Shown: positions 2,034 through 28,230 of the stretch, piece after piece
Layout of the letters: the number at the start of each line of letters is the position of its first letter
Position numbering within the stretch: the first letter of the stretch is position 1
Sequence record: NC_042081.1
Strand: one strand, 5' to 3'
DNA length: 64,000 nucleotides
Position numbers and translations under genes: made by a program
The notes under the pieces: model-generated
What the model was told of the DNA's origin: nothing
The model's input: only the letters and a program-made list of their open reading frames with translations
The model's database searches: none

Positions 2034-3677
2034 TTATTCTGCTTGGAATTTAGTGTTAATTACACTATTATAAAGTCCAGTTGCAGTATTTGCGTAACGC
2101 ATTGCTTCACGAATAATGGAGTCATGTTTAGGTGCACTATCTGTAATAATAGATGCTACCTTACGTGATACTTCTTCGATCTGTTCTTTAGAAACATCGT
2201 CGATTTTATCACTCTCTAGTTTCCGTGAAAGTTGATCAACATCATCTTCAAGTTGCTTAATGGCTTTAACAATGTTCCGTCCGCCAGTGATAACATTAGC
2301 TGCATCATCAACCAGATTACGTAGAGCTACTGCTTCTTTCTTAGCTTGACTCTTATCAAAGTTCTTTAAAGTCACTTCAGCGCCAGGTTCTGCGGCTGTC
2401 TCATCATCCGTTAGATATACTTGAGTAGCAGTCGTAGTTACAAGCTTATTACCCGGTAAAGTGTTAGATGTACTAGCGTAGTGTTTGAGAGGCCCATCTT
2501 GAAGTTTGTCCATCTTCTCAACTAGTTCGCTAGCATCATTACGCTCTGGATCCCAAGCTTTAAGCACAGTGCCAATATTCGTTAGGTAGGTAGCATAGTC
2601 TTTTGCATATACAGATGCCATCCATTTAACAATAGGGCCATATCCAACGTTAGCTGAAGGCTGAATGAATTTACCATTAGCAAATACGGGTCCACCATTT
2701 TTAACAGGAACCGTTAATTCACTGGGTATATTTTCAAACTTAGCATTTTGGATAGCTAAAATGAGTTCATCAACTTTTACGCTCACACGCGGTACACTAT
2801 TCTTAAGACTATCCCATACGTGGCTAATAATTTCACGTAGTTTAGCAATAGCTTTCTTGATATAAGCAAGCGCCTTACGACTTAACTCTTTAATATCCTC
2901 AGTTGAAATCTTAACTGGATATAAATGACTTTTACCACCAGTCGTATAGTTTTCTAATGAGCTAGTTAAAGTATTATCACCAAGTACATGACGATGTGGT
3001 AAGAGTGCAGAATGAATAAATGCAGCTGTACTTTGACTGATACCATTAATACCAGCTTGTCGAACAAGAGCTTTAATCGACTCTAGGGCATATGCGGTAT
3101 TTAGACCTTGATTAATATCTTGCACTGCTGTAGTAACTACTTGTGCATTACCAATGTCCATGAAATCAGTAGGTTTATCCATATCCACTGCAACAGCGAT
3201 CTGTGGCACCACGCCATTATGCGCTAGTGGAATAGAACTATCTTTGGCAGCCTGATCAGCGATTTGCTGAGTTACTGTTTCACCACCTTGTGGTTCCTCT
3301 CCTTCGGCACCTGCTGGAATAACTGTTTCAACAGCAATATTAGGTTGTTCAGGAATAGGGGGTACTTCTGTTACTACATCTGTTTCAACTACGGTAACTG
3401 GTACAGCTGGTTGTTCAACTAGAGTAGCAGCTGGAGTCTCAACAATAACGCCATTATTAGGAGTATTAACAATAGTGGTATCTGCATCCACTGGTGCAGT
3501 TGGTGTTACACCAACATTATTGTCAGTCACATCTTGAATAGTATTTTCAGGTACAGCGTCTTCAGAAATACAATCGCCACTAGTCATGGCTGCTACTTTA
3601 TCAACTGCTGTTTCAGGAATAGGTACCTCAGTATAGTCTTCTAGACTATCTAGATACTCATTGAGTTTAAATGTCAT
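2034..3677 (-). CDS. Inner head protein, phiKZ gp95-like (internal-head-protein paralog family)
   Basis: 547 aa. Acidic propeptide, then a block shared with gp93/94 (LE..AG..GISQ.AAF.H..SLENY..ISTEDIKE). Confidence 0.8.
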   Translation of the reverse strand: MTFKLNEYLDSLEDYTEVPIPETAVDKVAAMTSGDCISEDAVPENTIQDVTDNNVGVTPTAPVDADTTIVNTPNNGVIVETPAATLVEQPAVPVTVVETDVVTEVPPIPEQPNIAVETVIPAGAEGEEPQGGETVTQQIADQAAKDSSIPLAHNGVVPQIAVAVDMDKPTDFMDIGNAQVVTTAVQDINQGLNTAYALESIKALVRQAGINGISQSTAAFIHSALLPHRHVLGDNTLTSSLENYTTGGKSHLYPVKISTEDIKELSRKALAYIKKAIAKLREIISHVWDSLKNSVPRVSVKVDELILAIQNAKFENIPSELTVPVKNGGPVFANGKFIQPSANVGYGPIVKWMASVYAKDYATYLTNIGTVLKAWDPERNDASELVEKMDKLQDGPLKHYASTSNTLPGNKLVTTTATQVYLTDDETAAEPGAEVTLKNFDKSQAKKEAVALRNLVDDAANVITGGRNIVKAIKQLEDDVDQLSRKLESDKIDDVSKEQIEEVSRKVASIITDSAPKHDSIIREAMRYANTATGLYNSVINTKFQAE

Positions 3678-25484: not shown

Positions 25485-25622
25485 AGGGTTGGACAGATAG
25501 TTATTCTTTAATATAGTGTAAAATTACCAAATGTGTTAAATATATGTTGAACTAATCATTTTTTTCATTTGTCAATTTATATTGGCAAATATTAAATTAA
25601 GCCTCTATCGGAGTATAACAAG

Positions 25623-26117
25623 ATGTCAAATAAAGCTAAAGAACCAACTCTAACTAAAGAACAGGAAAAGACTCTACGTCTATTTGAACGTGCAGTTGGA
25701 GCATCAGCTGCGGCAGCTGATCATATTCTTAACCGTGATGGTTGGGATGTTGTCAATGTACTAGCAGGTTCCGTAGGTAAACGTATTCTACAAACTGAAG
25801 TATTCATTAATCCAGTTATCAATAAGATCAATGAAATCATTCCGACGTTATCTGATCCTACTGGATTCCAAAAGAACTTACAAACAGTTATTGCTGACCT
25901 TAATCGACTAACTAAAATTATCAGTGTCCTATATGTACAACATCAAGGTAAGGTTGGTCCAGCAAATAATGAAGATGAACTAAAACTCATCAGTGAACTT
26001 GTTACTAAATACACTGGTATTGAAGGTGCTATTGAACGCGGTATTGATGGTGTAATCCTAGCGATGATCGGCACTCTTCGAGAAGCTGGTTGGGACGAAA
26101 AACTAATTCAACAATAA
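25623..26117 (+). CDS. Hypothetical protein, phiKZ gp78-like
   Basis: 164 aa with SD GGAG. Confidence 0.6.
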   Translation: MSNKAKEPTLTKEQEKTLRLFERAVGASAAAADHILNRDGWDVVNVLAGSVGKRILQTEVFINPVINKINEIIPTLSDPTGFQKNLQTVIADLNRLTKIISVLYVQHQGKVGPANNEDELKLISELVTKYTGIEGAIERGIDGVILAMIGTLREAGWDEKLIQQ

Positions 26118-26128
26118 TGGAGTTTTAA

Positions 26129-27730
26129 ATGGCTACTGCTGACTTCGATAATGAGTACGATGATACTCCAGAAGAGAATTTACTAGATCAAATTGATGAG
26201 ATCAATGCGCAACACGATCCTGACTCTAGTATTGAAAATAATGACGAGGTGGAAACTCCACCTTTCGTTCCTGATCAAAAAGAAATTAAACTACGTATTC
26301 CACGTAATGCTAAAACTGGAAATATCCGGGATGCTTCTGAACCGGCTATTAAAGATAGTGCTAGCATTCTTACTTTGCTACGTGAGAACCCCCAGACTGT
26401 TTATGATTTCCTGGATCACAATAAAGAACTATTTAAAGCATTTGCTGATAATAAAGTAGATGACACTAGTGATGGTGTAAAGTGGACAGCTGCTATTCTG
26501 GAGGGCTTAGCTCACTCTATTGTTGAAGATTCGCCAATTGGTGCAACTGCCCGAGAAGGCTCTGAATGGTCTAGTGAAATTCCTTATGGTGAAAAGATCA
26601 TTCGACCTGGACGACCTGTATTTAATACCAGTGGTCGTAAAATGACCGATGATGAAACTCTAGTTTTCCTAACACGTAAAGCTAACATCGGTACGCCATA
26701 TGATACTTTCCTACCTCATTCAGGTATTTGGGTAAAACTACGTGCACCTACTGGTACTGAAGTAGCTGCCCTACAAGCACGTCTAGCACAATTAAAGATC
26801 CGGCTAGGCGCTGAATCAAAAGGTATGCTGTTCTCAAACATGGCAGCTGTGTTACTTAACATGGTTAGTAGTTTAGCACTTGCATGTGTTATTCAATCCA
26901 ACTATAAGTTCAACACCCCAACTGATCTAGAGCATGTTATCTCAGTAGCTGATGAGCCGTTCTTGCATCACGCACTAGCGGCGACTATGTATCCAGATGG
27001 ATTTAATTATAGTTATCCATGCATTGCAGATGCCAATACATGTAACCATATTGAAACAGCGAAACTTAATATGTCAACGCTTGTTCAATATGATCTACTG
27101 GCATTCTCAGAAGAACAAAAGAAATATATTGCACGTAAGTTTAATGCATGTACTGAATCTGATCTTAAGACTTATAAAGAAGGATTCCGTATTGAAACTC
27201 AAGTAACTGAAATGTTTGGTGACGTTGGTGTTGTTCTTGAGATGTGTACAATTGCTGATCGCCGAGAGTCTGGTGATAGTTGGATTAACTCAATTATCGA
27301 TATGACTCAAGGTAGTTTTAATGAACCAGTCGATGGTCCGCAACGTTCTCAGTATATTGCACGTTTACAAAAGATCTCTATTGCCCGTCAGTTCTCACAT
27401 TTTGTTAAAGAAATTAAAGTACGTGAAGATGACGATGGTGAAAGTTCTGAAGACAATATTCGTACTGCAACCACTAATCGTGAAACTATTGAAAAGTTCT
27501 TAACTAATATTCTATCCACACCGGAATATAATGACCGCTTTATTAATGCGGTGAGTAACTTCATTGATTCACAACTAATTGGAATGATTGCAATTACAAG
27601 TTGGAATTGTCCAGTATGTGAGTCACCTGCCGCTACTAAATTTAAAGAACGTTTCCCACACCTAATCCCTATTGACATGCTGTCAACTTTTTTTACTTTG
27701 GCGGCCTCGAAGTCAAACCGGATGGTGTAG
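26129..27730 (+). CDS. Conserved protein, phiKZ gp77-like; candidate tail/baseplate assembly chaperone (zero frame of a frameshift pair)
   Basis: 533 aa, SD GGAG, two Cys pairs (C..(6)..C and CPVC), U7 slippery run 10 codons before the stop. Confidence 0.7.
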   Translation: MATADFDNEYDDTPEENLLDQIDEINAQHDPDSSIENNDEVETPPFVPDQKEIKLRIPRNAKTGNIRDASEPAIKDSASILTLLRENPQTVYDFLDHNKELFKAFADNKVDDTSDGVKWTAAILEGLAHSIVEDSPIGATAREGSEWSSEIPYGEKIIRPGRPVFNTSGRKMTDDETLVFLTRKANIGTPYDTFLPHSGIWVKLRAPTGTEVAALQARLAQLKIRLGAESKGMLFSNMAAVLLNMVSSLALACVIQSNYKFNTPTDLEHVISVADEPFLHHALAATMYPDGFNYSYPCIADANTCNHIETAKLNMSTLVQYDLLAFSEEQKKYIARKFNACTESDLKTYKEGFRIETQVTEMFGDVGVVLEMCTIADRRESGDSWINSIIDMTQGSFNEPVDGPQRSQYIARLQKISIARQFSHFVKEIKVREDDDGESSEDNIRTATTNRETIEKFLTNILSTPEYNDRFINAVSNFIDSQLIGMIAITSWNCPVCESPAATKFKERFPHLIPIDMLSTFFTLAASKSNRMV

Positions 27731-28191
27731 TTAATGATCTGAGATATAGTCGTCTTGAGGCCACTTTCAAGGAAGATAGTGGTCACATCCTACATCCAAA
27801 CTTTGGTTATGATAAGTTAACTGAAGATGATACACACTTAGATAGACTATTATCGACAGTAGGGGCAGTAAGACCGTCTACAGCAGCACGTTTAACAAGA
27901 GAAGCATATCTACTTGATTACGATATCGGTTCACCAGAAAACGGACCCATGTGGTTAAATAAGGTAAATCCTAAAGAGGACTTTATCGAAGGTGGGTTGA
28001 GAAGGAGACTGACTAGAGATTTCTTCAAGTATAAAGTAGGTAGCTTATCTAATATGTCATTAACTGAATTCTTTGAATTAGCTTATTCTGAGGTAGAATA
28101 CATAATTGAATTATGTAGAAATATTACCCATAATGAAGCTGTTAATAACAATAACCAGTTAAATGAATTAAACAAGCCGTTAACTAAATAA
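27676..28191 (+). CDS. -1 frame extension of the gp77-like gene (ORF track reports only the last 80 aa from ATG 27949)
   Basis: Frame is open from 27676 to 28191 with no ATG/GTG/TTG for the first 91 codons; entered by a -1 slip at T TTT TTT 27688-27694. Confidence 0.7.
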   Translation, partial: HAVNFFYFGGLEVKPDGVVNDLRYSRLEATFKEDSGHILHPNFGYDKLTEDDTHLDRLLSTVGAVRPSTAARLTREAYLLDYDIGSPENGPMWLNKVNPKEDFIEGGLRRRLTRDFFKYKVGSLSNMSLTEFFELAYSEVEYIIELCRNITHNEAVNNNNQLNELNKPLTK

Positions 28192-28208: not shown

Positions 28209-28230
28209 CCCCTCTCCATGTGGAGAGGGG
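28209..28230. terminator. Bidirectional terminator
   Basis: CCCCTCTCCA-TG-TGGAGAGGGG followed by TTTATGTCG, between convergent genes. Confidence 0.8.

Follow-up and report, generated by a model that had tools for sequence, protein, structure and literature searches.

Does the gene for gp77 in Pseudomonas phage SL2, a phiKZ-like phage, end at its own stop codon, or do some ribosomes leave it early for an overlapping reading frame that has no start of its own? The locus comprises 2,063 bases (positions 26129-28191) of a window of 64,000 nucleotides (nt) from sequence record NC_042081.1, in which an open reading frame (ORF) of 533 amino acids (aa), the orthologue of phiKZ gp77 (PHIKZ077), is overlapped near its 3′ end by a second ORF in the −1 frame. 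These bases are 100% identical to MF805716 (212129-214191) and 95–100% identical to 46 other phiKZ-like records. The gene is the chimallivirus core gene cg18, one of the 68–72 core genes published for nucleus-forming jumbo phages (the figure varies between papers), and the published core-genome study lists it as a ‘hypothetical protein’, with Goslar gp081 and RAY gp267 under the same core gene. An earlier reading of the letters of the window (hereafter, the original prediction) proposed that a programmed −1 frameshift at a run of T's extends the 533-aa protein into the second ORF. Comparison of the locus across the family strongly backs this proposal, and we consider it probable (about 0.75) that −1 ribosomal frameshifting at U_UUY yields both gp77 and an extended form with a predicted length of ~687 aa.

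The ORF, the heptamer, the −1 frame and the stretch of 91 start-less codons on which the original prediction was built are all present in SL2 at the positions that it gave (coordinates here are those of the window, and features lie on the plus strand unless noted otherwise). The zero-frame ORF (26129-27730) matches phrog_4585 with an E value of 1e-195 and, close to its end, reads ACT TTT TTT ACT, which includes a slippery heptamer, T_TTT_TTT (27688-27694), of the X_XXY_YYZ type. The −1 ORF, which matches phrog_12109, extends from 27676 to 28191 and has 171 codons and a stop (28189-28191). Both frames are open from 27676 to 27730, the −1 frame opening four codons before the two Phe codons and frame 0 stopping 13 codons after them. 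The first ATG, GTG or TTG in the −1 frame is the ATG at 27949, 91 codons in, and it has no good Shine–Dalgarno sequence upstream. A shift at the heptamer would join 522 residues to an extension of ~165 codons (27694-28188), and the fusion length of ~687 aa that had been predicted follows by arithmetic.

In the mechanism that we propose, the ORF of gp77 (26129-27730) and the overlapping −1 ORF, which has no start and ends at 28191, would together be one recoded gene. Most ribosomes would stay in frame 0 as far as the stop at 27728-27730 and produce the 533-aa protein, and a fraction would slip back by one base at the T run (27688-27694), where the tRNA-Phe in the A site, and in SL2 also that in the P site, would re-pair with UUU in the new frame. 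Slipped ribosomes would then continue in the −1 frame to give a protein of ~687 aa, made up of the first 522 residues, shared with gp77, and a C-terminal extension of 165 residues. The slipping agent would be the ribosome and not RNA polymerase, and the two isoforms would presumably act together at a set ratio. The shifted product is presumably the minor one, because U_UUY motifs that lack a stimulator are weak in Escherichia coli (PMC4066793).

The layout is not peculiar to SL2. A tblastn search with gp77 identified homologues in 226 phage records (Pseudomonas, Erwinia, Salmonella, Serratia, Ralstonia, Klebsiella, Vibrio, Aeromonas, Burkholderia and Escherichia phages). When the −1 piece was used as the tblastn query, PS119XW, PhiPA3, 201phi2-1, Psa21, Phabio, Noxifer and others were matched at 34–40% identity, and these alignments start at query residues 1–6, which puts their beginning at the T run, upstream of where those genomes have their annotated starts. 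We compared 39 distinct loci, obtained from 20 annotated regions, 29 IMG/VR loci and one Logan contig (individual loci are given below by L numbers), which cover Goslar and phages of Pseudomonas, Ralstonia, Erwinia, Salmonella, Serratia, Klebsiella, Vibrio and Aeromonas. With a cut-off of 60% identity in the gp77 homologue, the loci fall into about 25 clades, and protein identity shared between the clades is only 20–55%.

In every one of the 39 loci, the homologous ORF that follows the gp77 homologue sits in the −1 frame and is open for 151–181 codons past the Phe-Phe site, frame 0 stops 10–46 codons past the site and the +1 frame is shut within 3–55 codons. Upstream of the site, over 400 codons, 1.5–19% of the codons in the −1 frame are stops; between the site and the frame-0 stop (up to 46 codons per clade) not one of the 473 codons that 25 clades contribute in total is a stop. 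Multiplied over the clades, the chance of such a stop-free stretch is ~1e-18, a figure that is overstated because the clades share ancestry. In numerous loci, just one to four codons separate the opening of the −1 frame from the site, and this, together with its freedom from stops up to the end of frame 0, pins the interval in which a frame change could occur to the Phe-Phe site. The recurrence of the layout is far beyond chance.

At the site itself, selection seems to act on the bases as well as on the protein. The motif Phe-Phe-x-Leu is invariant in the protein alignment. Every one of 24 clade representatives has T at bases one to five of the Phe-Phe codon pair, which form a T_TTY core that is invariant throughout the family (27689-27693 in SL2); the flanks are 33–75% conserved. 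All 24 clades write the first Phe as TTT, and the second is TTT or TTC; elsewhere in these genes TTT accounts for 0–50% of Phe codons in most cases and for up to about 0.6 in Eowyn and L050. When each gene's own codon usage is taken as the expectation, fixation of TTT at the first Phe codon has a product P of ~1e-13, which treats the clades as independent and thus overstates the significance. The wobble base before Phe-Phe is T in 17 of the 24 clades (P 4e-5), in codons for Thr, Leu, Ala, Val, Gly or Tyr, and these 17 have the full heptamer with X = T. Across the clades the T run is 5–8 bases long (7–8 in 15 of 24, 6 in seven, and 5 in two clades and in L026).

The G+C-rich RSF1 clade (L008, L039 and L040) is a case in point. 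Its genes use TTT for 0–2 of their 16–18 other Phe codons, and the other Phe-Phe pair in the gene is written TTC TTC; the shift site alone reads GTT TTT TTT, with eight T's in a row. As judged from these comparisons, conservation at the site exceeds what the amino acids need. Motifs of this type are known to be prone to shifting in E. coli, where U_UUC and U_UUU rank second and third among shift-prone tetramers, H_HHU_UUY belongs to the most effective heptamers and insertion sequence (IS) elements make use of U_UUU_UUC (PMC4066793).

The −1 ORF has the properties of a coding sequence that lacks a conserved start. Its translation aligns over all sampled clades, and several columns are common to 60–92% of the loci. 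Between the frame-0 stop and the first start codon, differences fall mostly at third positions of the −1 frame, and the proportion of non-synonymous differences (pN) is far below that of synonymous ones (pS); the ratio of non-synonymous to synonymous substitution rates (dN/dS) in this start-less stretch is 0.1–0.3, like that in the rest of the ORF. Substitutions of this kind indicate purifying selection on the protein that the start-less stretch would encode. The first ATG, GTG or TTG occurs 10–87 codons past the site, in scattered columns of the alignment (residues 11 to 88 in SL2 numbering). In SL2 and phiKZ, Ea35-70 and L033 the first canonical start comes after the most conserved motif, and in L050 and L029 the first start is deep in the domain, 68–70 codons in. 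In 7 of 25 clades there is no start, near-cognate or canonical, from −3 to +8 codons relative to the frame-0 stop.

Annotated starts of the small ORF are ATG, TTG, GTG or CTG at unrelated positions, and the annotated lengths are 45–153 aa. A search with the −1 piece of 1.84 billion representative proteins returned 38 matches of 45–175 aa, whose N-termini fall at query residues 5–89, and among these 1.84 billion there was neither an in-frame fusion nor a stand-alone full-length copy. All gp77 homologues found end at the frame-0 stop. On this comparison, the two frames have never merged in the sampled lineages and the small ORF has never been given a conserved start. The original prediction had named conservation of the heptamer and of start codons in orthologues as its check; the invariance of the T_TTY core and the lack of a conserved start position favour the shift.

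Several observations weigh against frameshifting. The support for the extended product is comparative throughout, and the two products of clade probabilities above are inflated in the way described. Seven of 24 clades have a base other than T before the Phe codons, which leaves only the A-site tRNA to re-pair perfectly, and L026 has Val-Phe in place of Phe-Phe, with five T's still in the same register. Conserved downstream structure is absent over the sampled clades in folding searches that did not extend to pseudoknots or trans-acting factors, and a conserved upstream Shine–Dalgarno-like element was not found in the 24 clades. Without a stimulator, motifs of this type give low efficiency in E. 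coli (PMC4066793). Several lineages have an early start after the frame-0 stop (a TTG overlapping the stop in 201phi2-1, a GTG in RSF1 and an ATG in PCH45), and in these lineages independent initiation may occur alongside the shift. Last, RNA is unevenly distributed over the locus in phiKZ, where the last 243 nt (27949-28191; phiKZ 71442-71684) are annotated as PHIKZ076.4, a protein of 80 aa that begins at the first ATG. Fifteen minutes into infection, RNA-seq values in reads per kilobase per million mapped reads (RPKM) are ~1400 for gp78, ~1290 for gp77 and ~7990 for PHIKZ076.4 (PMC12571901, suppl. 7), that is, 5–6 times more RNA over PHIKZ076.4 than over gp77.

The folding searches compared the 80 nt after the site with shuffled sequences in 22 loci, and windows of 40 and 60 nt with control windows from the same gene in 24 clades. 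Folding z-scores downstream of the site range from −1.4 to +1.3, and the folding-energy percentiles relative to same-gene windows are uniform (Kolmogorov–Smirnov p ~0.6, 24 clades). The original prediction had also put forward a stem in SL2, with arms at 27701-27712 and 27754-27764, as a candidate stimulator. These arms can indeed pair, and they do so in the minimum-free-energy (MFE) structure of the 80-nt segment, with a z-score of −0.85 against shuffles; the pairing is gone from the MFE structure of 90 nt and has no counterpart in L050, the closest non-identical relative. The stem is no more than chance, and the stimulator role proposed for it is not supported.

In three clades, represented by Goslar (L007, about 3400-3440), PCH45 (L011) and L015, an unusually stable hairpin stands a few bases past the slippery run, with an energy percentile of 0.00–0.01 relative to windows of the same gene; the other 21 clades are without one. 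These hairpins may be lineage-specific stimulators.

The best-surviving alternative to a ribosomal shift is transcriptional slippage, in which the T run makes the phage RNA polymerase stutter and mRNAs of altered length yield the same extended protein. The run has seven T's in SL2 and 7–8 in 15 of the 24 clades, and runs of seven U's are under-represented in bacterial genes in all frames, partly through such slippage (PMC4066793). Slippage of this kind needs no translational stimulator, and none is conserved; these phages also use their own non-canonical RNA polymerases (PMC4666361). Against this account, the invariant core consists of just five T's, and in 9 of 24 clades the run is only 5–6 bases long. 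Bacterial polymerases require about 8–9 or more homopolymer bases for appreciable slippage, and by that measure the homopolymer is too short, although the threshold of the phage polymerases may differ. In addition, the feature that is conserved is the register of the reading frame (TTT, then TTY, with a wobble T before them), which matters to tRNA re-pairing and not to a polymerase. We therefore regard slippage by the polymerase as improbable.

A second alternative, which we judge less probable again, holds that there are two separate genes. The downstream ORF would be translated alone, either from a non-canonical or downstream start after termination–reinitiation or, in phiKZ, from an internal transcript with the ATG at 27949, and the T run would be the footprint of Phe-Phe. 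All inspected genomes are annotated in this way, a start codon occurs at or just past the frame-0 stop in some lineages and the invariant Phe-Phe-x-Leu accounts for part of the T richness. The 5–6-fold excess of RNA over PHIKZ076.4 is the main observation favouring some separate expression in phiKZ. It could reflect an internal (late) promoter and a separate short product, or 3′ decay fragments that are protected by a terminator. The 4-mer TATG, which is the core motif of late promoters (PMC4666361), occurs near 27808 in SL2; no middle-promoter motif was found between 27700 and 27949.

The rest of the transcriptional evidence concerns the unit as a whole. A middle-promoter-like motif, identified by a pattern match only, occurs at 25520-25527, upstream of the gp78 orthologue; its counterpart is P78M of phiKZ, which has been described together with the middle-promoter motif (PMC4666361), and it is likely to be the start of the gp78–gp77 transcription unit. 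At the other end, 18 bases past the stop of the −1 ORF, a G+C-rich hairpin that is flanked by T runs on both strands (28209-28230) resembles a bidirectional intrinsic terminator. It sits between the convergent gp78–gp77 unit and the opposite-strand ORFs 76–76.3, and is kept in L050. As read from these two signals, gp78, gp77 and the −1 ORF would belong to one transcription unit that extends from the middle-promoter motif to the terminator-like hairpin. In knock-downs that block the middle and late programme, RNA from gp78, gp77 and PHIKZ076.4 falls together (PMC12571901, suppl. 7). Both antisense oligomers directed against the start of PHIKZ077 were flagged ‘tox’ (PMC12571901, suppl. 5 and 8), so the published screen gives no phenotype for this gene.

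A pair of separate genes leaves much of the comparative record unexplained: the synonymous TTT in 24 of 24 clades and the wobble T before it in 17, the −1 frame that in each clade is free of stops between the site and the end of frame 0, the placement in the −1 frame in all 39 loci, the purifying selection on the start-less stretch and the position of the first start inside the conserved domain in SL2, Ea35-70, L033 and L050. The ATG at 27949 also lacks a good Shine–Dalgarno sequence, and decay intermediates, as well as a separate transcript, give extra 3′-end RNA beside a terminator hairpin. The remaining explanation, that a homopolymer sequencing error or a recent frameshift mutation has broken one longer gene, draws on the junction of the frames at a homopolymer run, where sequencing errors and indels are most common, and is refuted by a T run of identical length in 46 independently sequenced phiKZ-like genomes (zero indels in the 81 aligned bases around the site, which excludes a sequencing error), by a two-frame layout kept in about 25 clades at 20–55% protein identity and by the lack of any unbroken version among the 1.84 billion representative proteins.

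What frameshifting at this gene might serve depends on what gp77 is, and here sequence comparison is of little help. Searches of Pfam, NCBIfam and PHROGs with either piece returned only unnamed PHROGs (phrog_4585, phrog_8054 and phrog_12109). A Pfam search with 26 members of the gp77 family gave no match at E values up to 1, and no annotated PHROG was matched. No solved structure was found by sequence, and a fold search of the PDB with the gp77 model also found none. The AlphaFold model of gp77, built from 18 homologues, is of medium confidence, with a predicted local distance difference test score (pLDDT) of 60 and a predicted template-modelling score (pTM) of 0.63; the single-sequence model of the −1 piece (pLDDT 39) is unusable. 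In BFVD, the gp77 model matched its orthologues and then eight entries of 226–312 aa with E values of 6e-5 to 1.5e-3 and template-modelling (TM) scores of 0.44–0.54 over the target. These eight are automatically named predictions, and their names are baseplate hub subunit, baseplate protein and ‘baseplate hub assembly protein, bacteriophage T4-like’, which we take to denote the gp26-type family of T4-like baseplate hub assembly proteins. BFVD entries that are named tail assembly chaperone match the model only at E > 0.2.

Two published sources are consistent with a role outside the virion. The phiKZ virion structural atlas of 40 constituent proteins does not mention gp77, as is expected of an assembly factor. 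In the 201phi2-1 record, the neighbours gp138 and gp139 are marked as found by mass spectrometry, and gp135 and gp136 are not. Separately, two Cys pairs that are far apart in sequence, C298/C305 (27020-27043) and C494/C497 (27608-27619), are both at least 90% conserved in the protein alignment of the gp77 family, a pattern that suggests a four-Cys metal site. Our best guess, which relies on a predicted fold and is offered as a lead only, is that gp77 acts outside the virion in assembly of the hub or tail, in the manner of T4 baseplate hub assembly proteins. The original prediction had drawn a comparison with T4-type hub chaperones; the fold resemblance to the eight BFVD entries speaks in part for that comparison, which finds no support in sequence profiles.

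The unit begins with the gp78 orthologue (25623-26117, 164 aa, phrog_14050), and the other neighbours of gp77 are gp79 (a structural head protein), RNA polymerase subunits, the gp75 helicase and several small ORFs on the opposite strand. This is not a tail module. No tape-measure gene is near the pair in the window, as had been noted from the sequence, and no hub genes are adjacent to it in the window.

Programmed −1 frameshifts that extend a protein at its C terminus are well established, and the mechanism proposed here is of this ordinary kind (lambda G/GT, T7 gene 10, IS3 OrfAB and dnaX). The original prediction placed the locus with lambda G/GT, and the two have much in common: a −1 shift near the 3′ end of the upstream ORF gives a second product that shares its N-terminal part with the first and is extended at the C terminus, the arrangement is kept over very divergent phages, the downstream frame is without its own start and both products are presumably needed at a set ratio. 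In contrast to G/GT, however, the gp77 pair is not beside a tape-measure gene, the motif is a Phe-Phe U run and neither piece matches a tail-assembly-chaperone family in Pfam, PHROGs or NCBIfam. The upstream protein also differs in size, as lambda G has ~140 aa and gp77 has 533 aa. An assignment to the G/GT kind of tail-assembly chaperone is thus not upheld.

In the T4-like hub assembly family, T4 gene 26 also yields two products, and we know of no frameshift in this family. The matched proteins are 226–312 aa in length, compared with 533 aa for gp77, which has no sequence-profile match to them, no solved structure for comparison and no adjacent hub genes in the window. T7 gene 10 resembles the locus in its mechanism: a −1 shift near the end of the gene, at a tRNA-Phe codon in a U run, turns 10A into the minor, C-terminally extended isoform 10B. 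That gene encodes a capsid protein with a short tail, whereas the extension here is a conserved domain of ~165 residues, and to our knowledge the T7 shift is not conserved across the whole virus family.

The OrfA–OrfAB pairs of IS3 and IS1 likewise consist of overlapping ORFs in frames 0 and −1 that are fused by −1 slippage. They encode the transposase of a mobile element and usually have a pseudoknot or hairpin, unlike the gp77 site, where none is conserved. U_UUU_UUC and U_UUY tetramers are among the motifs that IS frameshifts use, and motifs of low efficiency are common among them (PMC4066793). In E. coli dnaX, a −1 frameshift sets the ratio of two isoforms (tau and gamma) of a conserved gene, as the shift at gp77 may do; the dnaX shift truncates the protein, whereas that at gp77 would extend it. 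The dnaX signal comprises a heptamer of Lys codons, an upstream Shine–Dalgarno-like element and a downstream stem-loop (PMC5009743), and neither of these two elements was found at gp77. Three points are new here: the gene family concerned, conservation that reaches deep into the nucleus-forming jumbo phages and a cis-acting stimulator that seems to be missing.

These points can be drawn together into a more far-reaching proposal, which we regard as unlikely in its entirety and put forward tentatively. In this proposal, the shift would be an obligatory and deeply conserved recoding event of the Chimalliviridae that operates without a cis-acting RNA stimulator, and its efficiency would be set in trans, for example by phage ribosome-binding proteins or by the supply of Phe-tRNA in the infected cell. 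Two isoforms of a T4 gp26-like assembly factor for the hub or tail, one that is not part of the virion, would be held at a fixed ratio, and the shift would be a functional counterpart of G/GT with an independent origin in giant phages.

Current annotations do not capture the arrangement. In the record of SL2 itself, only 28054-28191, the last 45 codons of the −1 ORF, are annotated, and both this start and that of PHIKZ076.4 are inside the conserved domain. The ORF downstream of cg18 is not on the published list of chimallivirus core genes, and none of the approximately 22 genome annotations that we inspected has a joined coding sequence at this locus. In the literature searched, no paper connects frameshifting at this gene with phiKZ, jumbo phages or Chimalliviridae, which bears out the impression of the original prediction that the shift had not been described for phiKZ. 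Separately, a 96-aa partial protein (P0021) that is 90% identical to the −1 piece is filed at NCBI under Klebsiella pneumoniae, on a contig of 288 bases; its likely origin is phage DNA within a bacterial assembly or a mislabelled sample.

If frameshifting is the correct explanation, each sampled clade makes a protein of ~690 aa that is missing from the approximately 22 inspected annotations. Its C-terminal domain, present in 39 of 39 loci, has remained off the core-gene list and is annotated from arbitrary truncated starts (45 aa in SL2 and 80 aa in phiKZ). Correction would improve the annotation of hundreds of jumbo-phage genomes and would change the interpretation of knock-down and transposon screens of gp77 and PHIKZ076.4. 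The locus would also offer a clean natural example of recoding, in which a U_UUY frameshift is kept over very deep divergence without an obvious stimulator. The idea is testable with largely existing data and should be of interest to specialists in phages and in recoding. For the nucleus-forming phages themselves, the modelled resemblance to a T4-type hub-assembly fold may provide the first functional hypothesis for cg18, and a lead that can be tested.

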